Positions 1-30,489 of a DNA stretch of 64,000 nucleotides are shown one piece after another. The position numbers and the translations under genes were made by a program. Source of the DNA: Callorhinchus milii. Lineage: Eukaryota. Positions within the stretch are counted from its first letter, which is position 1, and every line of letters starts with the position of its first letter. Below the pieces are notes generated by a model. That model was given only the letters and a program-made list of their open reading frames with translations, ran no database searches and was not told where the DNA came from. The DNA is taken from the NCBI RefSeq assembly GCF_018977255.1, contig NW_024704742.1:137764001-137828000 (forward strand), written 5' to 3'.

Positions 1-1490
1 CATCACTCCTCTCCTTAACAATACCTGCCGTGGACCCTTTCCTGTTCTCAAACTGCAGCCCTATCTCCAACCTCCCTTTCCTCTCCAAAGTCCTGGAAAG
101 AGTCGATGCTTCCTAGCTTCGTCTTTCCTTTCCGGCCACTCCCATCACGAACCCCTCCAATCAGGTTTCCATGCCACCCACAGCATGGAAACAGCCCTGG
201 TCAAAGTGACAAATGACATTCTGTTCATCGGCAACGAGCGCTGCCTCTGCCTCCTCATTCTCCTTGACCTCTCTGCTGTCTTTGGCACTGTTGACCATTC
301 TATCCTCATCTGCCGCCTCTTCTCTCACCTCAACCTTCACGGTTCTGTCCTTGAATAGTTGATATCGTACCTCTCACAATGCCTCCACTTAATCTCCAAA
401 AACATTTTGTCCTCTAGCCCCGCACCGTCTCGTGCGGAGTTCCTCAGGGCTCTGTCCTTGGTTCCCTCCTCTTCAATATCTATATGCTCCCTCTTGGTGA
501 CATCATCCGCAGACATGGGGTCAACTTCCACATGTATGTGGATGACACCCAACTCTCCCTCTCTGCCTCTACCCTTGACTCCAGGACCCACTACTCTCCT
601 GACACAATGTCTGTCAGACATCAAGTCCTGGATGAGAGCGAACTTTCTACAGTTGAACGTCAACAAGATCGAGGCTCTCCTGATTGGCTCCCGTCAGCGA
701 CTCCTCACCTCAGGCGCTGACAGCATTACCGTCCATGTTGCACACTCCCTCCACCTCACTGAGCAGTACGGAACCTTGGGGTCTTGTTTGACCCTCAACT
801 TTCTGTCTTTCTGTCCCACATCTGTGCCATGACCTGCTCTGCCCTCCCCCGCATCCACAATATCGCCCGGCACCGCCACTGTCCCATACCAAAGCCACTG
901 AAACCCTCATACAGCTTTCATTGCATCCCGGCTTGACTGCAAACTCCTTGTTTGTCGACCTCATCAAATCCTCCCTCCATAATCTACAGAACAGTCAGAA
1001 CGCTGCAGCTCATGTCCTCTCCCACACCATACCCTCTAAGCCCCATCCTGGCCCGACTCCACTGGCCTCCCATCACACAGAGGATACAGTTCAATATCCT
1101 GGTCATCACCTTTCAAAGCCCTTGAAGGCCTCGCTCCCCCCTACCCCTGTGACCTCCTAACACACTATCAACCTCCTCAATCCCTCCGCTCAGCGGGCTC
1201 CAGCCTGCATCACGTCCCCCGCCTGCACTCCCACCAATGACGGGCCGGCCTTCAGCCACTCTGCACCCACCCTCTGCAACTCCATCCTGCAGTGCCTCCA
1301 CATCACCTCTGCCTTGCCTCTTTGAAGACGCATCTCAAGACCCTCCTCTTCAACCGTGTTTTTGATCAACACCCTTCCCCCATTGCCCTTCACGCTCCCC
1401 AATCCCGACCCCCAGCTCGAGTCCAACACACCAACTTTCCAGGGCTTTGGGCCTGACATGAAAGACAATATACAAATTTACTTTGTTGTA
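1..1490 (+). mobile_element. L2 LINE, decayed RT and 3' end
   Basis: Fragments such as PFLSKVLERV, DLSA.F.TVDHSIL, PQGSVL and MYVDDTQL. Confidence 0.9.
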
Positions 1491-2361
1491 TTTTGTTTCT
1501 TTAGATATTTGTTAATAAGAAATATTTAAGATCAAATGTGTAAAACATTAGTATTTCAGACATTTGATAATCACAAGAACATAAAAGAGGTTTGTGTGAA
1601 GAAAGTGTCCGGCCTCAACCACCCTTCCTGGTAACCGCTTCCAGCCATTAATTACCCTCTTTACAAAGAAATACTTCCTGGTATCTGTTCTTATTCAGGG
1701 TCACAACACTGACCCTGTGCCCTCCTGACGTACCTGAGAGCAATGACGTAGTTCTTATCAAATCCGTGAAGACAATCAATAAGTTCTACACTGTCCCCTG
1801 TCGGGTAACTAAATATTGCTGTTCTGATGGCAGTGCAGTGTCTGGGATGGTAACCAGTCTGTCTTGTTCCGACACTGATGGACCTGGTCGTGTGTTTAAG
1901 TTTTGCTTTACTCGGAGGGTAATCAGGGATTGGAACAGGTGGCCAGGAAGGGTGGCTGAGGCCAGGACACTGGGACTCATTTAAAAAGCAGTTGATACTG
2001 TGATTGGGAGTGGGGGGGTGGGTGTTCTGTAAGGATAAGACCAGATGGACCTTCTTCATTCAGACCAATCCTGGACTTGTGAAAAACACATTATTTATCG
2101 TTGGGAAGCTTCCCGCTGCTTGTCCAGCGAGGATCACCCTGGGCTTTAGCTTGTAGGGTTAACAGGAGACAAGTGGGAAGAAACCCTGTCCCCAGTAACA
2201 AACTAAAGTCTCCTCCTTTTGATACCATGTTTCTTGTGCTAATTAACACATGAGGAACAGGGTAAGGAATGAGACAAACATCGTCTGTAACATTGCGTCA
2301 CTGATGATTCATCTGTTCATTCACCCCTTTCCGTGTCCCACAGAGACAAGAGATCTCTTAC

Positions 2362-2746
2362 CAACAACCTGCAGCCGTGACATGTCCTGTGTCACCTGGT
2401 CCTGTTGGTACGTCTTCCTTTATAAACATGACGTGTACGTGACAGAAATACCGTCCGGTGTCGTTTAACTCCAGGCCCCTGATCTTCAGGGAAGCGTCTC
2501 CATCTCCCACATTCCTGACCAGCTTGTAGCGATTTCCTTCATTCACTGTCTCTGACTCCCCGGAGTTGGTGTGGGCGGTGAGGCCAAGAGTGTAATTAAA
2601 CACCAGCTGCCCATGTGGCCTCCCTCTCCTCCAAAGCACTGTGACTGTGGCACGATTCTGGTATGTGTTGGGGATGGTGAAGGAGCAGGGCAGTGTGGCA
2701 TCACCTCCCTTGGTACCAGTCACTGACCGGAGCTTCTCTTCATGAC
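2362..2746 (-). pseudogene. Siglec-15-like gene A, V-set domain 2 exon with +1 frameshift near its 3' end
   Basis: ctcAG acceptor and GTAAGA donor. ATLPCSF...LW...ASLKI..L...DTGRYFC motif. 385 nt versus 384 nt for the gene B paralogue; the extra base lies near 2409-2413. Confidence 0.8.
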
Positions 2747-3286
2747 CTGAGACAGGAACAGGATTGGAATAGTGCAGAGCAGTCAGTGTGACAGAGTACA
2801 TGTTACACACTGTGAAATCCTGGATATGTTACCTGCTCTTCATGGCACCATCTCCCTCAGGCCTGTGCTCCTCACTCACCCTGTGTGAGCCTATGGGCAG
2901 CACAATGTCTCACACACAAAACCTGGGATTTTTTTAGGACCAATAAAATAATTACTGGCAAGTGTAGTGACTGTTTTGCAGCGAGTTTACTCAGATGATG
3001 GACCCCCAATGGTCATGAAGACTCCAGGATTCTACCCTGCACCCTGAAAGTTAATGAAAAGCCAATTCAGATTGAGGATTGTTGGTGAAGACCGAAGGAG
3101 AAAACCCCTCCTCATGTGTTGGGGCAGCCGATTGCCTGATACATACAGAAATATGTCACCATTGTAAAGAGTATCTAAACCAGAGAGTGAGTACTACATA
3201 TATATCCACTCTGAGTATCTAATTCAGAGAGTATTATGCACATGTTGGCAAGTGCAAGGCTTGGGGACACCAGAGTATGTGTTTGG

Positions 3287-3400
3287 GATTCAACCAACGA
3301 AAACAGCATAATATTAATAATAATAACAATTTGGAATTCAACCAACGAAAACAGCATAATATTAATAATAATAACAATAATAATAATAATAACAATAATA
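3287..3400. repeat. About 48-bp tandem duplication followed by (AAT/AAC)n
   Basis: attcaaccaacgaaaacagcataatattaataataataacaat occurs twice. Confidence 0.9.
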
Positions 3401-3469
3401 CCTACATTTGGAGTAATGTTGTTGAGATGTCTCAAAGTACTTCACAGAATATACAGTATTGCCATTAAT

Positions 3470-3795
3470 AAAAATAATAATAATAATTATTATTGATACA
3501 GCGCTTTTCATGTCTTTAGATGTCTCTGTTCCCTGTGATGGACGGTGTGCAGCAGAATATGCTGTAAAGTGAATTGACTGTATATTTGTGGGTGAAATGC
3601 AGCAGCCAAGTGCGCACAGCAGTGTCCCACAAACAGTCGTGGATTGATAATGACCAATTTCTTTTTCTCTTGAGGCATTATTATCAGGCGTGTGGCGTCA
3701 GGAAACTTGCCCAAGGTTTGACACTGCTGGGAATCGAACTCAGGCCTTCTCGCTTGTGAGGCGAGTGCTCTAACCACTACACTACAGGACTCCAC
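3470..3795 (-). mobile_element. Older SINE copy; related copies at about 5280-5640, 9220-9830, 18165-18530, 27190-27390, 51780-52110 and 52725-52980 (all minus)
   Basis: Shared gagtgctctaaccactgagctacaggactc head and gcagccaattgcgcacagc body. Confidence 0.8.
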
Positions 3796-4431
3796 AGCAC
3801 AGTTGGCCATTGACGGCACTGTGTGGCAAGCTTCCTGCTGCTTGTGTAGATCTGTGGTGTTATTGAGCTGAGTGGGAATGGTCGCGCCCAGTGACTGGTC
3901 TGCCAATGAGGCTGATGCCAAATCAGCAGTGCCCTGGAGTACTGCGACCGCCTGGCTCAGGAACCAGACTAGAGACCCCCACAGAGGGTTGACTCCTGCC
4001 CGACGTCCTGTGGCCTGGTATGTCACTGTGGAGCCAGTCCCTGCTTTACACCGGCTTTGTGGTGGGAGAACCTTACAGGGCAGTTTGTGACCTGCCAGCC
4101 ACCTTGATGTTCTCGAGATCCATTGCCACGTCCCAGGCTTACTGATCACCAGCTGCTGAATCCAGGTCCTCATGTGAGGGGCCTCGGCAAATAGACAACC
4201 CCACAGTGAGGCCGCCTCAGCCTCCAGGTGCTCAGTGACAGGTCAGTGTACAGCACAGCCCTCCCTCCCTGCAGCCGCTCACTCACTGTCACCTGTCAGC
4301 TCCCTGCTACACACCGTCCATCACAGGGAACACTGGCTCTCTATTGCCCGTCCTGGGACGGGACACTTCCCACTGACTCCGGCCCCAGTGAGGAACGTCA
4401 CGTCTCATTCCCACTTCCCATCGTTCCTCAC

Positions 4432-4821
4432 CTGTAACAATCAGACGTGCTCCGGGGTCAGTTTCAAACTTTCCGTCCCCACCCTGGAGCTCCACACGAC
4501 AGGACCACAGCGTATTATTATCCTCTCCCCTCAGTTGGTTTATCTTTATTGTAGCGTCGTTCCTCCTCGGGTTCCCAATCACTCGATATCGCTCTCCCTC
4601 GTTTACATCAATGACATTTTGATACTTTCCCTGTGAATCCGGCCTATAATTTGTATATTTAATATACACAGGACCAGTCCTTCCTGCCTTCCACATGATG
4701 GTGATGTTCCCTGTGTATCTGGGGTGAGGGGGAGTGAACTTGCAGTACACAGTGACCGGTGACCCTAACCTGCCGGTCACTGTATCGGGGGTCTCCATCG
4801 TCCAGCCATTCTCACTGAGCC
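4432..4821 (-). CDS. Siglec-15-like gene A, V-set domain 1 (intact, essential Arg in CRVE)
   Basis: cacAG acceptor and GTGAG donor, 390 nt, phase 1-1. WTMETP...VYCKF...W...YRVIGNPRRND...SCRVEL...RLIVT matches human Siglec-15 as I recall it (WSMQVP...LPCTF...FRLLGNPRRND...FCRVEF...RLHVT). Confidence 0.9.
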
Positions 4822-6047
4822 CTGTGAGGACACACATGGTGTAATGTGAACCAGAACACAACATAAAAGCAAACAGGTAACACTGAGCTTGTACAAGAGC
4901 TTGGTTAGGTCACAGCGGGGAGTAATGTGGATAGTATTGGGATCCCCACTGTAAGAAGGATAAAAAAGTGATGGAAAAGTTGCAGCTTAGATTCACTGCG
5001 ATGTCCCCAGGGTTTAGCGGTTTAAGTTTGTAAAGGAGATTTGAAAGGTTGGGGCTTTTTTAGCAAACTGAGAAGGTTAGGGGTGACCTGATAGCGGTCG
5101 CTAAACCTCAAAGAGTCACAAAAGATTTTCCTCTCATCAGCCAGTCAGTCACAAGAGGAATAAATCTAAAACAATCACAAAAAATTAACTAAGAGAGGGT
5201 TAGAAACCTTCACTTTACACAGAGAGGATGGGATTGTGGAATCCTCTGCCACAGACGGAGTTGAGGCAAAGTCCGTCAATAATAATAATGAGTCTTGCAT
5301 TTCATACAGGTTTGATCACATCTTCGAGATGTCTCAAAGTGCATCATAGAATACACTGTAAAGTGAATTGACAGTATATATTGTGGGCGAAACGCAGCAG
5401 CCAATTGCGCAGCTGTGTCTCACAAACAGTCGTGGATTGAACAACATATTTATAATTTTTTTTGAAGGAATTATTCCCCACGAAAATGTGAACCACCAAT
5501 CAACTAACAACCAGGTTCCTACTTACTGCTAAGTAAACAGAAGCGTGTGGTGAGAGGAAAATTGCCCAACTTATGCTAATTGAACCCAAGTCTCTTGCCT
5601 GCGAGGCGAGTGCTCTAACCACTGAGCTACAGGAATCCACAGTCAAGTCAATAAAAGGGAATTGATGTTCGAAGAGGAGGAAATTAAATGGTGTTGGGGG
5701 GAGGGAGAGTGAGCGAGACACAGGGTGGGACTCAGCGTCATGTGAACAAAATAAAACTTGTCAAAATGGAATGAACGGGCGGAGGGGCTGTTTTCATGCT
5801 ATAAAAATACCATCATACCTTTCATGTCGGGAGGACATCAAGAGAGGGGTGAGGGGAAGGGACTGTGGGATGGAGTTCCAAAGGGTGAGGCAAACACTTA
5901 CACTGTGGGGCTCAGTGAGTAACACAGTTCTGTTCAGTTTAGAGACGGGAATCTTATTTGCAGGAGATATCACATGACTGTAATTATTCCAGTAAAAGGT
6001 AAAGCAGTAATTAAAGCCAGTCAGGTTTCTGATTGGAAAGTACGTAC

Positions 6048-6099
6048 GGGAGGCAGAGGCTGACAGGACCAGGGTACAGAGCACAGCTCCCAGCATCAT
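6048..6099 (-). CDS. Siglec-15-like gene A, exon 1 (signal peptide MMLGAVLCTLVLSASAS, ends phase 1)
   Basis: ATG at 6099, 17 mostly hydrophobic codons plus 1 nt, then donor GTACGT. Same 52-nt size as the signal exons of genes B and C. Confidence 0.85.
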
Positions 6100-6230
6100 C
6101 GTCCCTCACTCAGGACACACTCCTTCCCCGCGCACGTCTGCCTCGCACTGGCACAGCTGGTCACCCTTCTCTTTCCTTCCTCCTCTAGTTCTGTGGTCAC
6201 CACCAGAGCTCCACCCCACACATCCGCTTT
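6100..6230 (-). promoter_or_regulatory. Candidate proximal promoter/5' UTR of gene A (RUNX TGTGGT, E-box CAGCTG, Ets-like GAGGAA)
   Basis: Motifs at 6192-6197 and 6154-6159. The block is retained at 17818-17940 upstream of gene B, and A/B homology ends shortly beyond it. Confidence 0.35.
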
Positions 6231-6639
6231 GTTCTGATGCTCCGTCATGTTTCTCCCCAACACTAACCCGCCCTCACCCCCTGTCACAGTAACTGGGTGA
6301 CTTTTAATGCTCTATTACATTTCACACCCTTTTTATATTCGCAGCGTTTACATGGGAACACAAGAATTTGCTGATGAAGACAAAGGTCCATCTTGTTTGC
6401 CTTCCACCATCCTGGTAGTCGCTTGACGTGTCATGTCCCAGTGTATCCCAAGATATTATTTTTCTAGCAGAACTCTAATTTGTTCTTGAAACAGACAACT
6501 CTCTTTGCTTCCACCATCTTCCTCAGGAACCTTCCATAAGTTTCCTACTCTCTCACTGAAATACCGATCAAATGTTTTAATAACCTTTCCATTTCTGTAT
6601 TTGATGCAGAATTTGTAATGTTAGAAAGTCTTGAAGGTT

Positions 6640-6990
6640 TTCAACAGATCGTGACTGTGTTCATGGACAAACACAGCAGCGAGTTTGCACACAGCGATAT
6701 CACAAAAACAGTTAACTATGTTTTTGTGAACCATTAATCTGGTTGATCGTCGCGCAGGAAGCCGGGAGGAACTCGCTTCTCTTTTCCATCAGTGTCGAAG
6801 GATCTTTAATGTCAGTTAAACAGGTTCTTGGTTTAACGTCTCGTCTGAAGGACGGCAACTCTGAGGATGTACAGCTCCCCCTGGGCTGGAGCATCAGCCT
6901 GGACTCTGAGCACAATCCCGACATGGGCACGAACCCAGGCTTTAGACCCAGAGGTGAGAGTGTGACTGACTGAGCCAAACTGACTTCCTG
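6640..6990 (-). mobile_element. Older DeuSINE-like element (SacSINE1/AmnSINE-type); similar at about 29480-29650, 39030-39380, 39700-39970, 52110-52400 and 59630-60900
   Basis: tRNA-like head plus tgccgtccttc.gatgagacgttaaacc and Deu-domain-like segments. The family name comes from recalled similarity, not a search. Confidence 0.6.
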
Positions 6991-7119
6991 CGTTATGTTA
7001 AGGTCAGAGAAGTGGAGCCGCTGTCCATGTGATTTGTTGGTTTACAGCACAGAAGCCTTCCCCCCCTCTGCTGTCTGTGCTGGTGATCGCTCTTTACTGG
7101 GGCTCTATACGGCAGCTCT

Positions 7120-7360
7120 CTGTGTGTCTATGATTGTGTCTCTGTGTGTGTGAATGAATGTGTTCATCTTTCTCTATGTGTCTGTGTGTGTGTCTCTCTC
7201 TGTGTCTGTGTTTGCGTCACTCTCTGTGTGAGTGACTGTGTGTGTCTTTCGCTCTCTTTGTGTCTGTGAGTGAATATGTCTCTCGCTATGACGTGAGTGT
7301 ATGTTAGTCTCTCTCTGTGTTGGTCTCTCACTGTGTGTGTGTGAGTGTCTCTCTGTATGT
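7120..7360. repeat. Degenerate (TG)n/(TC)n microsatellite
   Basis: Direct inspection. Confidence 0.9.
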
Positions 7361-7769
7361 CTGTACATGGTGGAGGCCTTGAGAGCTCTGCAGCTCATGT
7401 CCTCTCCTGCACCTGGCGCTGTGACCCTGTCACCCCCACCCTCGCCCGGCGTCACTGGCTCCACTTCCCGCAGAGGATAGAGTTCAAAATCCTCATCTTT
7501 GCCTTCAGGGCCCCCACGGCCTCGCTCTTTCCTACCTCTGTGACCTGCTAACCCCATATCAATTTGCGCACTCCCTCCACACAGCAGGCTTCGGCCCACA
7601 CCAGGTCTGCCCTCCTGCCCACCATCAGGAGTGGGCATTCAGCCTCTCCGTCCCCACCCTTTGGAACTCTACCCAACAGTCCCTCCACTGCGCTCCCACC
7701 CTCGCCTCTTTCCAGGTACGTCTCAAGATCCGCTGCTTCGACATTGCCTTCGGGAACTCTCCTACAGCA

Positions 7770-9110
7770 ACAGCACAACAACAAAATTACATTTGTAAGC
7801 ACCTTTCACGTCGTGAGGACGTCCCAAATTGCTGGACAGACAGAGTTACGGACCCGAACTGGGGGTTGGGGTCGGGGAGTGTGGAGGGCAGTGGGGGAAG
7901 CAGGGAGATCAAAAGAAATGTCGAAGGGGAGGGTCTTGAGTTGGGTCTTGAAGTTGGCAAGGGAGGGGGCGATGCGGAGGGACTGCGGGATGGAGTTCCA
8001 GTGGATGGGGTCAGAGTGGAAGATGTCCCGCCTGCCAATAGTAGCGCAAGTGAGGCGGGGAACATGATGCAGGGCAGAGCCCACTGAACAGAGGGAGTGA
8101 GCAGGATGGTAGGTGGTTAGAAAGTCACAGAGGTGGGGGGGAGCAAGACCATGGAGGGTTTTAAATGTGAGGACCGGGGTCTTGAACTGTATCCTCTGGG
8201 TGATGGGAAGCCAGTGGTGTTAGGCGAGGATAAGATCATGGAGATTAGTGCGGGAGAGGATACAGGCTGCAGAGTTCTGGATGATCTGCGGCTTATGGAG
8301 GGAGGAGTTGGGGAGGCCGAGAAGCAATGGGTTTGCAAAGCCAAGCCACGATGTAATGAAAGCGGCCTGCGGGGTGAGACAGTGGCGGAGCCGGGCGATG
8401 TTGCAGAGGTGGGAAGCCAGAGCGGGTCGTGATGCATATGTGGGGTAGAAAGGAAAGTTTGGCTCAAACAAGACCCCGAGGTTCCGTGCTGCTCAGTGAG
8501 GTGGAGTGTGCAACCATGGATGGTGGTGCTGTCAGCGCCTGAGGTGAGGAGGTGCTGACGGGAGCCAATCGGGAGAGCCTCGGTCTTGTTGACGTTCAAC
8601 TGAAGGAAGTTCGCTCTCATCCAGGACTTGATGTCTGACAGACATTCTGTCAGGACAGCAGTGGTCCTGGAGTTCAGGGTGGAGGCAGAGAGGTTCAGTT
8701 GGGTGTCATCTGCATACGTGTGGAAGTTGACCCCATGTCTGCGGATGATGTCACCGAGAGGGGGCATATAGATATTGAAGAGGAGGGAAACAAGGACAGA
8801 GCCCTGAGAAACACTGCACGAGACGGTGGGGATCCCAGAGGAGAAGCCGTTTGTGGAGATGAAGTGGAGGCGGTGTGAGAGGTACGATCTGAACCAGTCA
8901 AGGACAGAGCCATGAACGTTGAGGTGAGAGGAGAGGCAGTGGATGAGGATAGAATGGTCGACGGTGTCGAAGGCAGCAGAGAGGTCAAGGAGGACGAGTA
9001 GACAGAGGGAGCCCTGGTCCCAGATAGACAGAGCGTCATTTGTCAGTTTGTCACTCCGACCCTCCTTGCCCTCCGCCATCCCTGATCCCAACAACTCTCC
9101 TGCACGGATC
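7770..9110 (-). mobile_element. L2 LINE fragment (tail-to-tail with a plus-strand L2 piece at about 7360-7730)
   Basis: ORF 8117-9094 with [18 protein letters not shown] and YADDTQL. Confidence 0.92.
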
Positions 9111-9901
9111 TAAATGCCTGACTGTCCAACCTCTTGGGATATCCTCCCAATGTGAACGGCGCTATACAAATCTAAAGTTGTATTGTCATTTTCTTTGTAA
9201 TAAATCTTGCAATTGATACAATGCGTTGTCACATCTTTGAGACGTCTCATAGAGCTTCACAGAGTATACTGTAAAATGCATTGACTGGGTATTTTTAAGG
9301 AGAAATGCAGCTGCTAATTGCATACAGCAGTGTCCCACAAACAAAGTGACCAAATTACTTTAAAAACAATTTTTTTGAAGGGAGTATTACACTAAAAGCG
9401 ATCGACTGACCTGTTTAGTTCCCACTGTCTGATAGGTAAACAAAGGCACGTGGAGGAAACGTACAGCGCTATACAATCTAATGTTGTATTGTCATTTTGT
9501 ATTGTAATAATCCTTCCCTGGATATAGCGCATTATCACGTCTTTGAGACGTCTGAAATCGCTTCACAGAATATACTGTCAGGTGCATTGCCTCTATATGT
9601 TGTCGGCAAAATGCGGCAGCGAATTAAACACATCAGTGCCAGTCGTGGATTGAGTGAACAACTTTTTTTTAAGGGATTATTACCTTCCGGAAAAGCGATC
9701 GACTTAAACAGAGGTGTGTGAAGTAAGGAAACTTACCGATCTTTTCACCCTGTCCGGGAATTGAACCCAGATCCTCTCACTTGCGAGGCCAGAGCTCAAA
9801 GCTACAGGACCACTAAGCTACAGGACTCGATTATTGTCTCACAGATTCACCCGCCTGCAGACACACTAACCCACACGACTGAGTGATACCTTCACAAGTA
9901 T

Positions 9902-9907
9902 TTTATT
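9902..9907 (-). other. Probable polyadenylation signal (AATAAA) of gene B
   Basis: TTTATT on the plus strand inside a block (about 9890-9950) homologous to 20995-21060 downstream of gene C. Confidence 0.5.
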
Positions 9908-10579
9908 CAGTCATTTGGAAAACAGAACATTTACTAAGGAGCACAGGTTTAGTAGCAAAAGGAGTTCATGAGAGAGTCCCATTCAATGTCTTGGAATCAA
10001 CGATGTTCTTCAAGGTTGGAGGTTGGAGGTTCCAACAACCCATTGGAAAGGATGAGATTCCAGGAAGCCGCGAGGAGTTGATGAGATGTGTGAAGTTGAA
10101 GGCACGGGATGAGCACAACCCCTGAATACACTGACCGTTTCACAGTGGGTGAGAAGAACGGTGAGATCAGGATTCTCACTGCAGCGATTGGAACAGAGGT
10201 AAGAAGTCATCTTTTCAAACACAGCTATTTAGAACATGGAAGGCTTTGACATGAGTGGCTGCTGGAGGTCATAACCTTCAACCTAACAGCAACAACGTGC
10301 ATTTATACAGCGCCCTTCACATGGGGCAGCATCTCGGAATGCTTCACAGTGGCGTAGCCTGATGCCAAGCCGGGGGGACAGAGGAGGTGACTGTGAACGT
10401 CGTCGAAGCAGCTCAATGCTATAATGGGAGGACTGCAGGCTGGCGTTTACTGCAAGGATGAGATCTTATAGGCCAAAAGGTCTCGATCATTAGAAGCTCT
10501 GCCTCACCTGAAGCTCTTGTGATCTTGTACGAAACACTTTCATGGCCACTGGAGACAGGCACAGGTGAGAGAGCGGGAA

Positions 10580-10629
10580 CTATACAGAGCTCCTTCTTTT
10601 CTTGGCCTCAGGATGGAGACGCCTTGAAT
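10580..10629 (-). CDS. Siglec-15-like gene B, terminal coding exon (tail DSRRLHPEAKKRRSSV*)
   Basis: Polypyrimidine tract plus catAG acceptor; homologous to 22260-22410 of gene C. The phase-1 reading follows the TM exon. Confidence 0.6.
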
Positions 10630-10962
10630 CTATGAGTGAAGAAAAAGAATGAGATCATGTTTCAGCCAAACAAACACTGTTATTGGGAGTCACGGGTTCC
10701 CATGTTCTCAAAGGCTCAACAGAATCGCAAAATTACACCTCGTCTCAGCCCTTGAGATGTTTTGCCCATAAACCCAGGGTGGTACAGAAATGGGGTAAAT
10801 CCAACAACAACTTGAGAGGAACAAACAGGGACTGAGGCAGGGAGTTCCAGAGATTAGGGTCATAGTGACAGGAAGCGCAGCCACTGATGCTGGTGTTGAG
10901 GGGTCAGGGGACGTGCAGCAGGCCTGTGCAAAGAGGGTGGGCAGAGCAGTGGGGTACAAGGT

Positions 10963-11291
10963 GTGGAGTCCTGTGGCTCAGTGGTTAGAGCACTCGCTTT
11001 GCAAGTGAGAGACCTGAGTTCAATTCCAGGCAGAGGGCGAAACCTTGGGCAAGTTTCCTTACTCCACACAGAGCCTAATAATAATCCCTCCAAAAACCAA
11101 AAAACAATAATAAATTGGTCATTTTCAATCTACGACTGTTTGTGGGACATTGCTGTGCGCAATTGGCTGCCGCGTTCGCCCACATATATGCAGTCAATTC
11201 ACTTTACAGTGTATTCTGTGAAGCGCTTTGGGACGTCCTCCCGACGTGAAAAGCGCTATATCAAATGCAAGGATTATTATTATTATTATTA
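10963..11291 (+). mobile_element. Young full-length tRNA-derived SINE (Deu-domain-like body, L2-type tail, (ATT)n)
   Basis: A box TGGCTCAGTGG, B box GTTCAATTCC, TTTGCAA loop (Ala-TGC-like). Flanked by an apparent AAGGTG target-site duplication. Confidence 0.9.
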
Positions 11292-11393
11292 TAAGGTGAT
11301 GGAGAGTAACTGGGAACTTTTTAAGACTTGTGAAAAAGTTAAAGACTGAACGGTCTGACCGTCTGGAATTGTGTTTTACAGACAAGAACAAAC

Positions 11394-11768
11394 CTTGTGT
11401 TTTACAGAGGAGAACGATCCCGATCACCAACAGAAAGAGACATTTAGCTGCTGGCATCAGCCACAGCATCGCAGTGATGAAGCTGCCATCACTCTGTGGT
11501 CCAGGTGCGAGGATGTCTCGGGCGTCTCTGCCCTGTGTGTTCTCAGCTACACAGCGGTAAGTTCCCCTCAGCCTCGGGCCCCGGATCTCCCCCACGGTTA
11601 GATGCTTGTCCGGTACATGTGTGACTGGCGTGTGGCTGGTGTTAATGGGCAGCGTGTTATTATCAGGGTCAATCCATGTGATGTTAGCCAGTGGTTCCCC
11701 CTCAGCCGAGCACACAATGTCACCTCCGGCCACGAGGGACAGACTCAGGATGACGGCCGGAGCTTCAG
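11394..11768 (-). CDS. Siglec-15-like gene B, C2-set domain plus transmembrane helix with Lys
   Basis: VCSAEGEP.A.ITW...GTYRCVAEN..G resembles the Siglec-15 C2 domain (LCTAEGEPP...YTCTAANSLG). TM is FITAMLWLMPAAKCLFLLVIGIVLL. Donor GTTTGT is conserved with gene C. The acceptor is at 11768 or 6 nt downstream (both in frame). Confidence 0.88.
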
Positions 11769-11809
11769 CTATAAAGAAACACAGAGTTATTCTAACCAAA
11801 CAACTGTCC

Positions 11810-12495
11810 CTATGGTGTCTGTGCTGGTGCTCACTCCCCCACTGGAGCTCTCTACTCTAACCCCATTCCCTGCTCTCTCTCCCCATGGTGTCTGTGCTGG
11901 TGCTCTCTCCCCCACTGGAGCTCTCTACTCTAACCCCATTCCCTGCTCTCTCTCCCCATGGTGTCTGTGCTGGTGCTCACTCCCCCACTGGAGCTCTCTA
12001 CTCTAATCCCATTCCCTGCTCTTTCTCCCCATGGTGTCTGTGCTGGTGCTCTCTCCCCCACTGGAGTTCTCTACTCTAACCCCATTCCCTGCTCTCTCTC
12101 CCCATCGTGTCTGTGCTGGTGCTCTCTCCCCCACTGGAGCTCTCTACTCTAACCCCATTCCCTGCTCTCTCTCCCCATCGTGTCTGTGCTGGTGCTCTCT
12201 CCCCCACTGGAGCTCTCTTCTCTAACCCCATTCCCTGCTCTCTCTCCTCATCGTGTCTGTGCTGGTGCTCGCTCCCCACTGGAGCTCTCTACTCTAACCC
12301 CATTCCCTGCTCTCTCCCCATCGTGTCTGTGCTGGCGCTCGCTCCCCACTGGAGCTCTCTACTCTAACCCCATTCCCTGCTCTCTCTCCTCATCGTGTCT
12401 GTGCTGGTGCTCGCTCCCCCACTGGAGCTCTCTACTCTAACCCCATTCCCTGCTCTCTCTCCCCATCGTGTCTGTGCTGGGGCTCACTCCCCCAC
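11810..12495. repeat. About 73-bp minisatellite, about 9.5 copies, in the gene B V2-C2 intron
   Basis: Unit atggtgtctgtgctggtgctcactcccccactggagctctctactctaaccccattccctgctctctctcccc, starting at 11812, 11885, 11958, 12031 and so on. Confidence 0.95.
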
Positions 12496-12839
12496 TGGTG
12501 CTCTCCAGTTCCACTCCAAACACGTTTCACAATTCGTTTTTAATATTTGGGTCTATTCGGGACCCAGCGCTTTGCGACGTCCTCCTGATGTGAAAGACGC
12601 TCTATAAATGTACTTTGTTGTTGTATTTTCTGGAGTTTCTGTAGATATTTGTTAATAAGAAGTATTTCATTTCAAATGTGTAAAACATCAGTGTTGAATG
12701 TATTTGATAATCACAAGGTCACGAGAGGTTTGTGTGAAGAAAGTGCTTCAGCCCATTTGATCTCAATCTTCCCGTCCCCCCCAACCCACTGTCGATGTTA
12801 CAGCATCAAGCTCTTTCTGTTATGAGCTCCAGTATCATA

Positions 12840-13200
12840 GCAACATAGGAATTAGGAGTAGGAGTAGGCCATTCGGCTCCTCGAGCCTGCGCCGCCATTA
12901 AATAAGATCATTTTCTAACCTAACTCAATCTGTCCGCCTTATCCCCATATCCCTTAATCCCTCTATCCTTTAGAAAGCTATCAATCTCAGTCTTGAGTAT
13001 GTTCAAGGACTGAGCAGCTACAGCCTTCTGGGGTAGGTAATTCCATAAATTCACTACCCTCTGAGTGAAGAAGTATTTCCTCAACACTGTTCGAAAGGGC
13101 TGTCCCTTAATCTTAAGACTGCGACCCTCGTTCTAGATTCTCCTACCAGGGGAAATAGTCTACTCTATCAAGCCCGATAAGAATCTTATATGTTTCTATG
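12840..13200 (-). mobile_element. CR1 3' end fragment (gene B specific); other CR1 pieces at about 4880-5280(+), 20550-20915(+), 21230-21760(-), 24670-25625, 27900-28760(-), 29040-29280(-) and 33680-34320(-)
   Basis: Shared aggagtaggccattc.gccc.tcgagcc 3' UTR motif and RT C-terminal fragments. Confidence 0.8.
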
Positions 13201-13944
13201 TGTCCTGGCCTCAACCACTCTCCCTGCTAACCGATTCCAGTCATTAATTATGCTCTGGGCAAAGAAATATTTCCTGGTATCTGTTCTTATTTTGCCCATC
13301 ACAACACTGACCCTGTGCCCTTCTTGACGTATCTGAGAGCAATGACGTATTTCTTATCAAATCCTTGAAGTAAAGTTCCACACCGTCTGCTGACGGAAAA
13401 TTAAATATTGCTGTTCTGATATCAATGCAGTGTCTGGGATGGTAACCAGTCTGTCTTGTTCCAACGCTGAGGGACCTGGTCGTGTGTTTTGCTTTACTCA
13501 GAGGTTAATCAGGGATTGGAACAGGTGGCCAGGAAGGGTGGCTGAGGCCAGGACACTGGGACTCATTTAAAAAGCAGTTGATACTGTGATTGGGGGAGGG
13601 GGGGGGTGGTGTTCTGTAAGGATAAGACCAGATGGACCTTCTTCATTCAGACCAATCCTGGACTTGTGAAAAACACATTATTTATCGTTGGGAAGCTTCC
13701 CGCTGCTTGTCCAGCGAGGATCACCCTGGGCTTTAGCTTGTAGGGTTAACAGGAGACAAGTGGGAAGAAACCCTGTCCCCAGTAACAAACTAAAGTCTCC
13801 TCCTTTTGATACCATGTTTCTTGTGCTAATTAACACATGAGGAACAGGGTAAGGAATGAGACAAACCTCGTCTGTAACATTGCGTCAGTGATGACCTGTT
13901 CGTTCACCTCTTTCCGTGTCCCACAGAGACAAGAGATCTCTTAC

Positions 13945-14328
13945 CAAACACCTGCAGCCGTGACATGTCCTGTGTCACCTGGTCCAGTTGGAATTCTTTC
14001 TTCATAAACATGACGTGTACGTAACAGAAATACCGTCCGGTGTCGTTTAACTCCAGGCCCCTGATCTTCAGGGAAGCGTCTCCATCTCCCACATTCCTGA
14101 CCAGCTTGTAGCGATTTCCTTCATTCACTGTCTCTGACTCCCTGGAGTTGGTGTGGGCGGTGAGGCCAAGAGTGTAATTAAACACCAGCTGCCCATGTGG
14201 ACTCCCTCTCCTCCAAAGCACTGTGGCTGTGGCACGATTCTGGTATGTGTTGGGGATGGTGAAGGAGCAGGGCAGTGTGGCATCACCTCCCTTGGTACCA
14301 GTCACTGACCGGAGCTTCTCTTCATGAC
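13945..14328 (-). CDS. Siglec-15-like gene B, V-set domain 2 (intact, no essential Arg)
   Basis: 384 nt, phase 1-1, AG acceptor and GTAAGA donor; LPCSF...W...DTGRYFCYV...RLQV. Confidence 0.88.
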
Positions 14329-14933
14329 CTGAGACAGGAACAGGATTGGAATAGTGCAGAGCAGTCAGTGTGACAGAGTACATGTTACACACTGTGAAAT
14401 CCTGGATATGTTACCTGGTCTTCATGGCACCATCTCCCTCAGGCCTGTGCTCCTCACTCACCCTCTATGAGCCTGTGTCCTGCTCACATGGAGCATAAAC
14501 ACCAGCATAGACCAGTTGGGCCAAATGGTCTGTTTCTGTACTGTATATTCTATGTAACTCTATGCAATGTCTCACAGGCACCGCCCACAATAGGGCCCTC
14601 AGTCTTTGCTCATCCAATCACTCTGAAGCAGCGCCTCCTCTCTGCTCTGATTGGGCTGATCTCATCAATTCTACCAATCGATTGTTTATCCGTTCTGTCA
14701 ATCACTGACCGACCCTCCCACCGCCAGCCAATAGAGAGCCAGCTCCTGGTGGTCAAGATGGGTTGAGGAAACAAGAGAAGGTTTTGTTGTTGTCACTGTT
14801 TATTGACTCTCACTGTCACCTGTCAGCTCCCTGCTACACACCGTCCATCACAGGGAACACTGCCTCTCTATTGCCCGTCCTGGGACGGGACACTTCCCAC
14901 TGACTCCGGGGCCCACTAAGTAACATCACGTCT

Positions 14934-16500
14934 CAACAACAACAACAACCACTTGCATCTATATAGCGCCTCCACGCAGGGCAGCATCTCAGAGTGCTTA
15001 CGTGGCGTAGCCTGACTCCAAGCCGGGAGAAGAAGGGAGGTGGCCGTAAGCATGGTCAAAGAGGAAAGTTTTCAGATGGGACCTGCGAGAGGGGAGAGGG
15101 GTCGAGGCGGAGCGATTGAGGGACAGCGTTTCAGAGTTTGGACGTAGTGTCTGAAAGCGCGATATCCAATGGTGATGCGGAGGGTGCGAGGAACGAGCAG
15201 GAGGTCGGAGTCAGTCGAGCAGAGGCACCAGGTAGTGGATTGGGGCATGTGGAGGTCGGAGAGGTAGGGAGGTGCCAGGGAGTGAAGGGATTTGAACATG
15301 AGTGTGAGGATCTTGAAGTCAATTCATTCGGTGATGGGGAGCCAGGGGAGCCTGGTCAGAACATAATATAACATAACATGTAGGAACAGGAGTAGGCCAT
15401 TTGGCCCTTCGAGCCTGTCCCGCCAATCAATCATGGCTGACCTTCTAATCTAACTCGAGCTAATACCATAACCCTGCCTTATCCCCATATCCCTTAATCC
15501 CTGGTTAAAGGGAACTGGTGAGATGTGGGTATGGAGTTTGGTTTGGGTCAGTATGTGGGCGGCAACGTACTGAATGAGTTGGATCTTTTGAATTTGGAGA
15601 AACCGGTGAGGAGTGGGTTGGAGTAATCCAAGTGGCAGGTGACAAGCGTATGCACGAGGGCTTCAGCTGCATTGAGGTACAGTCAGAGGCAGGCAATATG
15701 GTGGTGGTGGAAGCCGTCGATCCTGGTCAGGGATTGGAGGTGGGGGAAAAATGATAGCTTGGGGTCAAACTGAACACCTAAGTTGCGCACTCATTCAGTG
15801 AGTCTGAGGGAGAGCCCAAGGAGGGTGAGGAGTTTAGATCTGCAGAAGTGAAGACATTGACAGGAGTCAAGGAGTATGGCTTCTGTCTTCCCCATATTCC
15901 ACTGCAGGAAGTTAGTTTACACTCATCCGGGCCTTGATGTCTCCCAATCAAGCTGATAGAACATTGGCGGACCTGGAGTTGGTACTGGAGGAGGCAAAGT
16001 AGATTTGTGTGTCATCCACAAACATGTGGATGTGGAAGTTTACCCCATGTCTGCGGATGACATTGCAGATAAGGAAAAGAAGAGGGTCAAGGATGGAGCC
16101 CTGGGATAACCGGGGGGTTACCGGGCGGGGGCGGGAGGAGAAACCATTTGCTGACATGAAATGGAGGCAGTTGGTTAAGTAGGACTCGAACCATGTGAGT
16201 GCGGTCCCATTAAGGTAGATGAGGGAGGAGAGCCGATGGAGGAGGATAACATGGTCGACTGTGTCGAACGCAGCAGAGAGATCCAGGAGAACGAGGAGGC
16301 AGAGGGGGCCCTGGTCACAGATAGAGAGAATATCGTTTGTGACTTTGACAAGTGCTGTCACTGTGCTGTGGGCAGTCAGGGCAAAAACCAGACTGCAGGG
16401 GCTCGAGGAGGGAGTGGAGGGAGAGGTGTGACCGAAGCTGACCTGCAACGATGCATTCCAGGACTTTAGCAAAAAAGTTAGGTTCCAGATTGGACATCAC
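14934..16500 (-). mobile_element. L2 LINE inserted in the gene B V1-V2 intron (absent in gene A), with a nested CR1 3' end at about 15360-15505
   Basis: RT motifs in ORF 15948-16472. Gene A is contiguous across the site (cacgtctc|attcccactt). Confidence 0.9.
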
Positions 16501-16525
16501 ATTCCCACTTCACATCGTTCCTCAC

Positions 16526-16914
16526 CTGTAACATACAGACGTGTTGCACAACTGGTTTGAAACTTTCCGTCCTCACCCTGGAGCTCCACACGACAGAAAA
16601 ACAGTTTATAATCGTCCTCTCCCCTCAGTTGGTTTATCGCTATTGTAGCGTCGTTCCTCCTCGGATCCCAATCACTCGGTGTCGCTCTCCCTCGTTTACA
16701 TCAATGACATTTTGATACTTTCCCTTTGAATCCGACCCATAATTTGTATATTCAATATACACAGGAGCAGTCCAGCCTCCCAGCCACCTGATGGTGATGT
16801 TAAATGTGTATCTGGGGTCAGGTGGAGTGAACTTGCAGTACACGGTGACCGGTGACCCTAACCTGCCGGTCACTGTATCGGGGGTCTCCATCGTCCAGCC
16901 ATTCTTACTGAGCC
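16526..16914 (-). pseudogene. Siglec-15-like gene B, V-set domain 1 exon with -1 frameshift (or a sequencing error)
   Basis: 389 nt versus 390 nt in gene A. One base is missing at about 16663-16669 (GGATCCC), giving a TAG at 16640-16642. Restoring the base gives ...IG(D)PRRNDATIAINQLRGEDDYKLFFCRVELQGEDGKFQTSCATRLYVT with normal splice sites. Confidence 0.8.
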
Positions 16915-17765: not shown

Positions 17766-17817
17766 GGAAGGCCGAGGCTGACAGGACCAGGGTACAGAGC
17801 ACAGCTCCCAGCATCAT
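17766..17817 (-). CDS. Siglec-15-like gene B, exon 1 (signal peptide MMLGAVLCTLVLSASAF)
   Basis: Near-identical to gene A exon 1; donor GTACGT. Confidence 0.85.
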
Positions 17818-26607: not shown

Positions 26608-27024
26608 CGACGACCCGCAGCCACATCTGATTCTGCGTCACATGTTCCTGTGTAGTGTGTCCATGAGACACATGTCCCTGCGTCGTGTGTTCCTGCGTCG
26701 TGTATTCCTGCAGTGTGAACGTGACGTGTACGTGACAGAAATACCGGCCGGTGTCATTTAACTCCAGGCCCCTGATCCTCAGGGAAGTATCTCCATCTCC
26801 CACATTCCCGACCACCTTGTAGCGATTTCCTTCATTCGCTGTCTCTGACTCCCCGGGGTTGGTGTGTGAGGCGAGGCCAAGCGTGTCATTAATAAACGGC
26901 CGGCTTTGTGGATTCCCTCGCCTCCAAATGACATAGATATTACTTGGGTGAATGCCTGGCATGGTGAAGGAGCATGGCAGTGTGGCATCACCTCCTTTGG
27001 TACCAGTCACTGATAGGAGTTTTC
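26608..27024 (-). CDS. Siglec-15-like gene C, V-set domain 2 with repeat-expanded F-G region
   Basis: Paralogous to the V2 exons of A and B; donor GTAAGT. The ancestral acceptor is deleted; the in-frame gaAG at 27026-27025 is inferred as the acceptor (417 nt). Confidence 0.8.
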
Positions 27025-27839: not shown

Positions 27840-30489
27840 CTGCCAGCAAACAATAGGGCACAGAGGGCGAACAGGACACGCAATCAATTAAATCAATATC
27901 ATAAGAATAGGAGTAGGTCATTCAGCCTCTCGAGCCTGTTCCGCCATTCCATTAGATCACCACTGATCTGTAACCCCAACTACAATTAACCGCCCTTGAT
28001 ACACTGATCTACGTCCCCCACCTCGCCCACCCCAACATTGGCGGGCGGGCCTTCAGCCACTCTGACCCCACCCTCTGGAACTCCATCCCGCAGTCCCTCT
28101 GCCTCACCCCCATCTCAAGACCCTCCTCTTCGTCCATGCTTTTGATCTCCCTGCTTCCCCCCCTTGCCCTCCACCCTCCCTGATCCCGACCCTCAGCTGA
28201 CTGCCCAGTGCCCTGGGATGTCCTCCCAACATGAAAGGTACTATACAAATGTAATTTTGTTGTTATTGTTGCTGACCTAAACATTTACCAGCTCAGTCTT
28301 GAAAATTTCAATGGATCCAGCATCCACAGCCTTTTGAGGAACAGAGTTCCAGATTTCCACTCCCCTTTGCATGAAAAAGTGTTTCTTGATTTCACTCCTA
28401 AATGGCCGAGCTCTAATTTTAATATGGTGCATCCCTTTTTCTGGAGAGGAAAGTTTCTCTGTAGCTACCCTATCAAATCCCTTTATTAATAATGATAATC
28501 CCTTCAAAACCAAAAACAATAATAAATTGGTCATTTTCAATCTACGACTGTTTGTGGGACATTGCTGTGCGCAATTGGCTGCCGCGTTCGCCCACAAATA
28601 TACAGTCAATTCACTTTACAGTGTGTTCTGTGAAGCGCTTTGGGACGTCCTCCCGACGTGAAAAGCGCTATATCAAATGCAAGGATTATTATTATTATTA
28701 ATTAGATCCTCAATCTTCTAAACTCAAGTAAATACTGACCAAGTATTCTCTTGAGTTTAGACCCTCTTGGGAGAGAGTAGAGTGCTCATTCCATTCCAGA
28801 TAAACAGAAATTTCATAGTACAGTATTGTAGAATCCTCGGTAGTTTGGTTTGTGGACTCTTAAGCACGGTGATAGATTTCCTCTTGTATCAACACCCGGC
28901 TGACCACAGACAAAGTGTCTGCGCTCTTACTGGAACCCTCGATTCTAATCTAGTTTCTAACGTTAAAATGATGCTAATTTTAGAGCACATGAGCTACCAG
29001 AACAAAGGCGCAGTTAAAGAGTTTCTCGTCTTATTGAATCCCTTTATCATTTTAAAAACAAACCTCGATTAGATTAACTCTCAACCTTCCAAACACAAGG
29101 GAATACAAGCCAAGTTTATGCAACGTCTCTCCATAATTTAACCCTTTAAGCCCTGGTATCATTCTGGTGAATCTGCGCTGCACCCCCTCGAGAGCCAATA
29201 TATCCTTCCTAAGGTGCGGTGCCCAAAACTGAACACAGTCTCCAGATGGGGTCTGAACAAGGCTCTGTAAAACTGTCAATCAATCAATCTCTTTCACTCC
29301 ACATAACATGCCTCACAGTGAACCACACGACAGGTGCAGGTGCCAAAGGTTCAGGTTTAGCTCAATTTTGATAATCCTTCCATTTTGATACAGTGCCCAT
29401 AACATCAAATTTAGTGACTGTGTATTTATATTCAAAGGCATCAGGCATTTTGCTCACAGCAATGTTCCGTAGACAGCCATGACATGAATGGCCAATTATT
29501 CTGGTGGGATTATTGGTCAGGACACTGGGAATATCTTCACAGCGCAGCCCTAACACTGCGCTGAGATTCAGCTTGGACCGTGAGCTCAAAGTCCTCGATC
29601 TGGGCCAAGAAGCAACAAGCTTCTGACCCAGAGTTAAGAGACAGGCTGTCATTTGAGTGTCGTTTGAATGTCAGCGTGGACGTTTGAAGCTCAAAAATCT
29701 ATTGGCTTCAGTTCAATTTTTCATGTTGTCATTGGGTCCTGTTCCAAGTGACTCCCTTTCAATTAAATATCAAACCCATATTATCTTTTACATTGGCATT
29801 CCAAATGAAGTCGTATAATTCTGCTTAACCCTTTATCCCTTCATATCATTTCGCCCACAAAATAGTCAATTCAATTCACTTTACAGTATATTCTGTGAAG
29901 CGCTTTGAGATGGCTAGAAGACATGATAAGGCGCTACATCAAATGCAAGGATTGTTATTATTATTATCTCCTGAGATTGTGGCCTTGTCAAACAGCACTT
30001 AATATTGGGATAAGGATCACTACTCTGAGGGGGATGGTTGGCCATGACACTGGGAGAAACTCCCTTCTCTTTTCTTGTCATGTAATTGCTAACATCCACC
30101 CAAATAAATAGACTGGACCTTGGGTTAGCATTCCATCTACTGAATAATGCATTTCTGCATATTTCTGTACTGGAGTATCAGCCTAGACTGTGAGTTCAAC
30201 GTTCCTGAGACTTGAACCCAGGGCCTTCCACTGTCTGACCCGCACGAAAACCCATCACTGATTAAGCGTTTTTAAACAGTGAGACTTCCATATACGTATG
30301 TCACGTATACATGGGATATTCCTTGTGTCTGGAATGGAATGCGCACTCTCTCCCTGGAGGGAGGCATCCTGCTTACCTAATTCCAGATAGTATTAGGCAC
30401 AGGTTGGTGAGAGCCGAGGCTTGGGGACTCCGGAGTGTGCGTTGGGATAACTGCTGGAATCAAATCATCTAAAATCATCATGGTCTTGG

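Follow-up and report, generated by a model that had tools for sequence, protein, structure and literature searches.

Two adjacent Siglec-15-like genes of the elephant shark Callorhinchus milii, here called A and B, each carry a single-base frameshift in one of their two V-set exons, A in the second (V2) and B in the first (V1). Both genes are encoded on the minus strand of the 64,000-nucleotide (nt) window that was analysed (MU249832.1:137764001-137828000, assembly GCA_018977255.1), which also contains a third gene, C. The source species was recognised from an exhaustive protein search with the first V exon of A and from cluster look-ups, and the coordinates come from fetched loci; adding 137764000 converts a window position into its position on MU249832.1. 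The two lesions are complementary, because the predicted in-frame product of each gene keeps the V domain that the other gene has lost. The initial annotation of the window proposed on this basis that the duplicates had partitioned the two V domains between them. The present analysis identifies routine gene decay or a sequencing slip as the most likely explanation, ahead of such a division of labour. The favoured reading, held with moderate confidence, is that two independent young lesions, complementary by coincidence, arose in a receptor array that is both decaying and renewing itself.

A and B lie side by side in a large tandem array of Siglec-15-like genes, in which forms with a transmembrane (TM) lysine are mixed with forms that carry a tail resembling an immunoreceptor tyrosine-based inhibitory motif (ITIM). 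According to this reading, each gene would have acquired a frameshift of one base in one of its V exons, independently of the other gene, and that the two lesions struck different V exons is most simply put down to coincidence in a birth-and-death family with gene conversion. The A lesion would be very young, while the B lesion, located in a G run, would be either young or a base-calling error. As assembled, neither gene can produce a full-length protein, and their normal mRNAs are predicted targets of nonsense-mediated decay, because the stops lie upstream of further exon junctions. Any protein from A or B would then have to be made from in-frame exon-skipped transcripts.

Two frameshifted exons in an array of two-V-domain genes

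Exon limits in A and B were derived from the AG/GT splice sites together with an alignment of the two genes. The close paralogues D to I (reported as seven further close copies) were fetched from two loci on the same chromosome, L001, which lies downstream of A, and L002. These genes belong to an array of two-V-domain Siglec-15-like genes with at least nine close copies within about 190 kb, which are 94-99% identical, plus the more divergent gene C (about 24.1-27.8 kb in the window), which shares the V1-V2-C2/TM order of A and B. D to I carry the same exon set as A and B. The survey comprised 18 V exons from A, B and the close paralogues: the four of A and B and 14 paralogue exons (eight V1 and six V2). 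Only A V2 and B V1 are frameshifted. All eight paralogue V1 exons are 390 nt long and open, and the six paralogue V2 exons are likewise open, with a length of 384 nt or, in one case, 369 nt; all 14 are bordered by AG/GT. Two broken exons out of 18 represent a modest load for the array.

Both V1 and V2 are assigned to the Pfam V-set family. The best match of A V1 in the PDB is human Siglec-15 (7zoz, E = 1.9e-15), with the GNPRRND motif and the F-strand CRVE arginine aligned (CRVE to CRVE). Thus, A V1 has the essential F-strand arginine and is closest to Siglec-15; B V1 has CRVE only in the restored register. The best PDB match of V2 is also human Siglec-15 (7ZOZ, E = 1.9e-8), and a His or Tyr residue occupies the arginine position. 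Two V-set exons precede the C2 exon in all copies and also in elasmobranch relatives, and no copy has the Siglec-15 ectodomain of one V-set and one C2-set domain. NCBI names the shark relatives either Siglec-15 or Siglec-12, and a literature search for shark or chimaera Siglec-15 retrieved nothing relevant and no paper describing a two-V array.

The insertion in gene A V2

The insertion in A V2 turns GGAAACG, the form found in D and G, into GGAAGACG, which is not a homopolymer change. Downstream of it, the conserved G strand (..MSRLQVV) is out of frame. Gene C and the other paralogues use B's frame at the 3' end of V2 (..MSRLQV.), which identifies this frame as the ancestral one. The full-length open reading frame (ORF) of A as assembled carries a frame-disrupting lesion and a premature stop, as expected for a pseudogene; the stop, codon 289, lies 13 codons into the C2 exon. 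With the insertion set aside, A V2 shows zero unique substitutions in comparison with seven other copies. Since there is no other unique change in this exon, the lesion should be either very young or not real.

An assembly or polishing error in at least one of the two genes, B more probably than A, is a possible but rather doubtful explanation in such a repetitive array; the genes would then encode intact receptors of the type signal peptide (SP)-V1-V2-C2-TM. For A, it is favoured by the fact that V2 differs from the family consensus by the inserted base only, and copies that are 94-99% identical invite mis-mapped polishing reads. Furthermore, the V2 of an older-assembly model, P0132, is the closest to A V2 (106/109) and is in frame across the site, reading KETYQQDQVTQNMSRLQVV. 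However, the A insertion is not a change in homopolymer length, and P0132 is not identical to A but chimeric, with a V1 equal to that of gene F, which limits its value as a check on A V2.

It is highly improbable that A escapes its frameshift by means of a cryptic donor, CAG/GTTGTT, located 7 nt upstream of the normal donor. Its use would restore the frame and generate a full-length protein, but one in which the G strand of V2 is scrambled. The CAG/GT is present in the sequence and the joined ORF is open through the C2, TM and tail exons tested, but the normal donor TTG/GTAAGA is intact and much closer to the consensus. In addition, 17 residues (DVPTGPGDTGHVTAA) would replace the ..MSRLQVV G strand that is conserved in all paralogues and in other species, and V2 probably would not fold.

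V2 exons differ by 0.5-5.5% among copies. The region encoding the V2 FG loop (window 2395-2430 and 13975-14010, and the equivalent sites in L001 and L002) is hypervariable among otherwise near-identical copies, with the variants KETYQQ, MEGSHQ and KKEFQL and a five-codon deletion in F. In gene C, TQEH-like repeats enlarge the same loop (window about 26620-26730).

The deletion and the divergent tract in gene B V1

In B V1, a G4 run has lost one base, GGGG in the H paralogue being GGG in B, and the full-length ORF of B as assembled terminates prematurely at codon 109. Such a contraction is a classic long-read or polishing error, and because the deletion shortens a G run, a miscall is plausible here. 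A sequencing error would also be in line with the restored register, in which B V1 keeps both cysteines, the tryptophan, PRRND and CRVE, and with the tendency of its changes to avoid conserved positions.

B V1 contains 23 unique substitutions, compared to 0-6 in the other V1 copies, and its terminal branch is 0.11 versus a median of 0.015. The flanking intron and V2 of B together show only five unique changes in 1169 sites, in contrast to 23 in 389 sites of V1 (Fisher p = 2e-10), which amounts to a divergence about 14-fold higher in V1. Simple neutral decay was rejected as the sole cause of this divergence, because V1 has diverged far beyond the introns around it. In the divergent 290-bp tract, which spans columns 92-382 of the exon, the changes affect several bases at a time and cluster in the BC, C-C', F and FG/G regions. 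The branch omega is about 1.1, with synonymous and non-synonymous sites raised about equally. This pattern may stem from gene conversion by a divergent copy outside the sample, from homogenisation of all sequence but the tract, or from past diversifying selection. Whichever of them applies, the frameshift need not be old. An exhaustive profile-free protein search with A V1, complemented by word-indexed searches, returned no B-type V1 read in frame, but only other paralogues and older chimeric models.

Several observations weigh against the favoured reading of a decaying array. B V1 does not resemble a long-dead exon, as its 23 unique substitutions are confined to one part of the exon and its amino-acid changes are under-represented at positions conserved in seven elasmobranch relatives (4/48 versus 19/80, p = 0.03), although they include an invariant glycine (G37F). 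Moreover, no damage is seen in the SP exons, the partner V exons, the C2/TM exons or any splice site, and neither A nor B contains any other disabling mutation. This lack of further decay would fit either very recent lesions or genes that are still used via exon skipping.

Much of what the initial annotation described at the exon level stands. A V2 does have 385 nt (+1) and B V1 389 nt (-1), against 14 paralogue V exons that are all open. The partner exons, A V1 and B V2, are intact as claimed (390 and 384 nt, both open), and the comparison with D and G confirms that the A insertion lies outside a homopolymer. The B deletion had been correctly recognised as a -1 lesion but placed merely beside a short C run; it is better described as lying within a homopolymer, where GGGG has become GGG (16667-16669).

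Kinship of A and B

A V1 is sister to E, from which it differs by 1.3% (support 96/96), and A V2 is nearest to G (1.0%). B V1 differs by about 11% from every other copy and falls outside all others in the tree, and B V2 is nearest to F. Judged from these trees, A and B are not sister duplicates but neighbours in an array that appears to be under concerted, birth-and-death evolution. Subfunctionalisation presupposes sister duplicates of one ancestor, and both the trees and the differing 3' modules of A and B contradict this. Because A and B are not sister duplicates, there would be no shared ancestral function to partition. The ratio of non-synonymous to synonymous change (dN/dS) between A and B is about 1 in both V exons, based on few sites and with no power to separate relaxed from diversifying selection.

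Signalling modules and the V1 arginine

B, C, D, F and H encode a TM lysine (AMLWLMPAAKCLF in B) and a short tail, from which pairing with DAP12 may be predicted. A, E and I encode an uncharged TM segment, followed by tail exons with the ITIM-like motif VIYSVV, and gene G has a repeat expansion after C2 that reaches the end of the locus. The C2 segment of B is GEPLANITWIDPDNN, and the C2+TM exons comprise 369/375 nt in B and 372 nt in A. The two types of C-terminal module alternate along the array. Thus, at the sequence level, the array has the make-up of paired receptors, with adjacent genes, near-identical ectodomains and opposite modules.

The V1 arginine is kept in A, E, G, H and I. Four of the five sampled TM-lysine genes have no usable V1 arginine (B due to the frameshift, C with Trp, D and F with Cys; Fisher p = 0.048, uncorrected for relatedness). 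In six elasmobranch species, the TM-lysine orthologues named Siglec-15 all have Leu at the V1 arginine position and His in V2. A general rule by which activating copies lose the V1 arginine was nevertheless not retained, as H keeps its arginine and the test does not account for relatedness among the four copies that fit.

In gene G, the short stalk is replaced by a long stretch of SDGDRQ-like repeats in the exon after C2 (L001:68055 to the end of the locus). The C2 exon of A carries a 12-nt in-frame insertion (DGAG, L001:2700-2720); an insertion of a similar kind is present in C and H and absent from B, D, E, F and I.

Exon skipping and gene models

Rescue of A and B by in-frame exon skipping is formally possible. 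The SP exon ends in phase 1 and every immunoglobulin (Ig) exon is phase 1-1, except that A V2 ends in phase 2 as assembled. Both skipped ORFs are open, SP-V2-C2/TM-last exon in B with 284 amino acids (aa) and SP-V1-C2/TM-tail in A through all exons tested. It is unlikely, though, that the lesions are real and tolerated in this way, in which case A would provide V1(Arg+)-C2-TM with an ITIM-like tail and B would provide V2(no Arg)-C2-TM(Lys), such that inhibitory and activating neighbours show different V domains. This scenario is consistent with the integrity of all other exons and splice sites, and the loss of V1 in an activating member fits the wider trend seen in four of the five TM-lysine genes and in the six elasmobranch orthologues. 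A precedent among Siglecs is CD33, in which in-frame skipping of the phase 1-1 V-set exon 2 (D2-CD33) leads to a receptor without its ligand-binding domain (PMC9954446, PMC6712934, PMC7992807). Unlike in A and B, skipping in CD33 is documented and driven by an exonic single-nucleotide polymorphism.

Against a tolerated loss by skipping speaks the fact that A and B are not sister duplicates, and the A lesion is too young for selection to be visible. Two lesions would also fall into different exon types by chance with about even odds. Both broken exons have the splice sites found in the intact paralogues, which gives no sign of a shift to skipping, and no other changes that would promote it are present. 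Among the NCBI models of the region, which are chimeric and unreliable, there is no exon-skipped isoform. That both lesions are not only real but fixed and skipped, with the inhibitory A showing only the Arg-bearing V1 and the activating B only the Arg-less V2, is less likely still. If true, the two binding domains of a two-V Siglec would have been uncoupled naturally between an inhibitory gene and its activating neighbour, in agreement with the trend towards loss of the V1 arginine in TM-lysine members.

NCBI lists no complete ORF for A or B, and the only coding sequence (CDS) over the region is LOC103188796 (218 aa). It begins at a Met inside B V2 (window 14011) and joins window positions 13946-14011 and 11692-11769 to L001:2765-8058. 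LOC103188796 is thus a B-to-A chimera, which leaves the B C2 exon at an internal GAG/GT, re-enters at the homologous AG/GT in the A C2 exon and continues into the A tail. Likewise, LOC103174418 joins the V exons of E to the C2/TM exon of F, LOC103188797 joins H to I, and the models of the older assembly are also mosaics. Read-through splicing, hybrid haplotypes or the mis-chaining of near-identical copies may account for these cross-gene models. As cross-gene chimeras, the NCBI gene calls were rejected as transcript evidence and count neither for nor against skipping.

Intron 3 of B contains, just upstream of the C2/TM exon (window 11807-12505), a 73-bp minisatellite with 9.6 copies that are 95% matching. 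Older Ensembl models read into this minisatellite.

The premises from which the partition of V domains had been derived were sound, since the Ig exons are indeed phase 1-1 and can be skipped in frame with open products, and the arginine is present in V1 (CRVE) and replaced in V2 (His or Tyr). The conclusions fared less well. A without V2 would not reproduce the canonical Siglec-15 layout, because A has an uncharged TM segment and a VIYSVV tail. A partition between the duplicates is not supported, in view of their lack of sister relationship, their different signalling modules and their unchanged splice sites. The alternatives that had been listed alongside it, pseudogenes or a sequencing error especially in B, are better supported.

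Comparison with known Siglec systems

Siglec-15 is found throughout the vertebrates and has a TM lysine, a short tail and an association with DAP12 (PMC6941304, PMC6288428). Among solved structures, it is the best match of both V exons of the shark genes, which also share with it the GNPRRND and CRVE motifs of V1 and, in the case of B, the TM lysine and short tail. They differ from it by having two V-set exons instead of one, by their multi-copy arrangement and by the uncharged TM segment and ITIM-like tail in half of the copies, including A.

Human SIGLEC12 has a polymorphic frameshift, and its splice forms contain one or two V domains. Its product, Siglec-XII, has two V-set domains and a mutated essential arginine (PMC6288428). 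The two V-set domains are shared with the shark genes, and one shark relative is named Siglec-12 by NCBI. Unlike the shark genes, however, SIGLEC12 is CD33-related and ITIM-bearing, has more C2 domains and is not close to them in sequence.

SIGLEC11/16 and SIGLEC5/14 are pairs in which an activating gene (TM charge, DAP12) lies next to an inhibitory one (ITIM). Gene conversion keeps the ectodomains of each pair near-identical, and a small indel or a fusion deletion has commonly disabled one of the two genes. In contrast to these pairs, the shark array contains at least nine copies, and its lesions are located in single V exons of a two-V ectodomain. Siglec pairing and arginine mutations have been summarised (PMC6288428).

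Frameshifts alone are expected in any fast-turnover immune-receptor array, and one of the two may be a base-calling error. As markers, they suggest that the elephant-shark array is still losing genes, and A and B could serve as natural test cases for the dispensability of V1 or V2 in a two-V Siglec-15-like receptor. Of greater interest than the lesions themselves is their setting, a large two-V array with mixed tails in which TM-lysine members are repeatedly without the V1 arginine.

Exon structure of A and B and further features of the array

The exons and lesion sites of A and B are listed in Table 1.

Table 1. Exons and lesion sites of genes A and B (window positions unless indicated otherwise)
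Feature	Position	Strand	Description
Gene A SP exon, CDS	6048..6099	-	52 nt, MMLGAVLCTLVLSASAS, ends in phase 1; 100% identical to the first 18 residues of NCBI model P0128
Gene A V1 exon	4432..4821	-	390 nt, intact V-set; CRVE arginine and GNPRRND
Gene A V2 exon	2362..2746	-	385 nt, +1 frameshift in the FG-loop region; ends in phase 2
Gene A insertion site	2411..2418	-	GGAAGACG; GGAAACG in paralogues D and G
Gene A intron 3, start	1..1857	-	Runs on beyond the window
Gene A C2+TM and ITIM-like tail exons	0.8-6.2 kb before window position 1 (L001:2682-8058)	-	Outside the window
Gene B SP exon, CDS	17766..17817	-	52 nt, MMLGAVLCTLVLSASAF, ends in phase 1; SP segment ..GCCTCGGCCTTCC
Gene B V1 exon	16526..16914	-	389 nt, -1 frameshift at codon 83, stop 8 codons on
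Gene B G run at deletion site	16667..16669	-	ATTGGGATCC; ATTGGGGATCC in paralogue H
Gene B V2 exon	13945..14328	-	384 nt, intact V-set; Tyr at the Siglec-arginine position (His in other copies)
Gene B C2-set + TM exon	11394..11768	-	TM lysine, AMLWLMPAAKCLFLLVIGIVLL; two in-frame AG acceptors 6 nt apart (11768 and 11762)
Gene B last coding exon	10580..10629	-	DSRRLHPEAKKRRSSV, then stop

Gene H contains three tandem V1 exons (L002:11205-14605), two of which are identical while the third differs by 2.8%, and a 738-aa NCBI model translates all of them in series. Extra SP exons occur at L001:9982-10063, 28200-28281 and 31386-31467, either far from their V1 exons or duplicated before them: one is located 9 kb upstream of D V1 and two precede E V1. 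NCBI treats these exons as alternative first exons.

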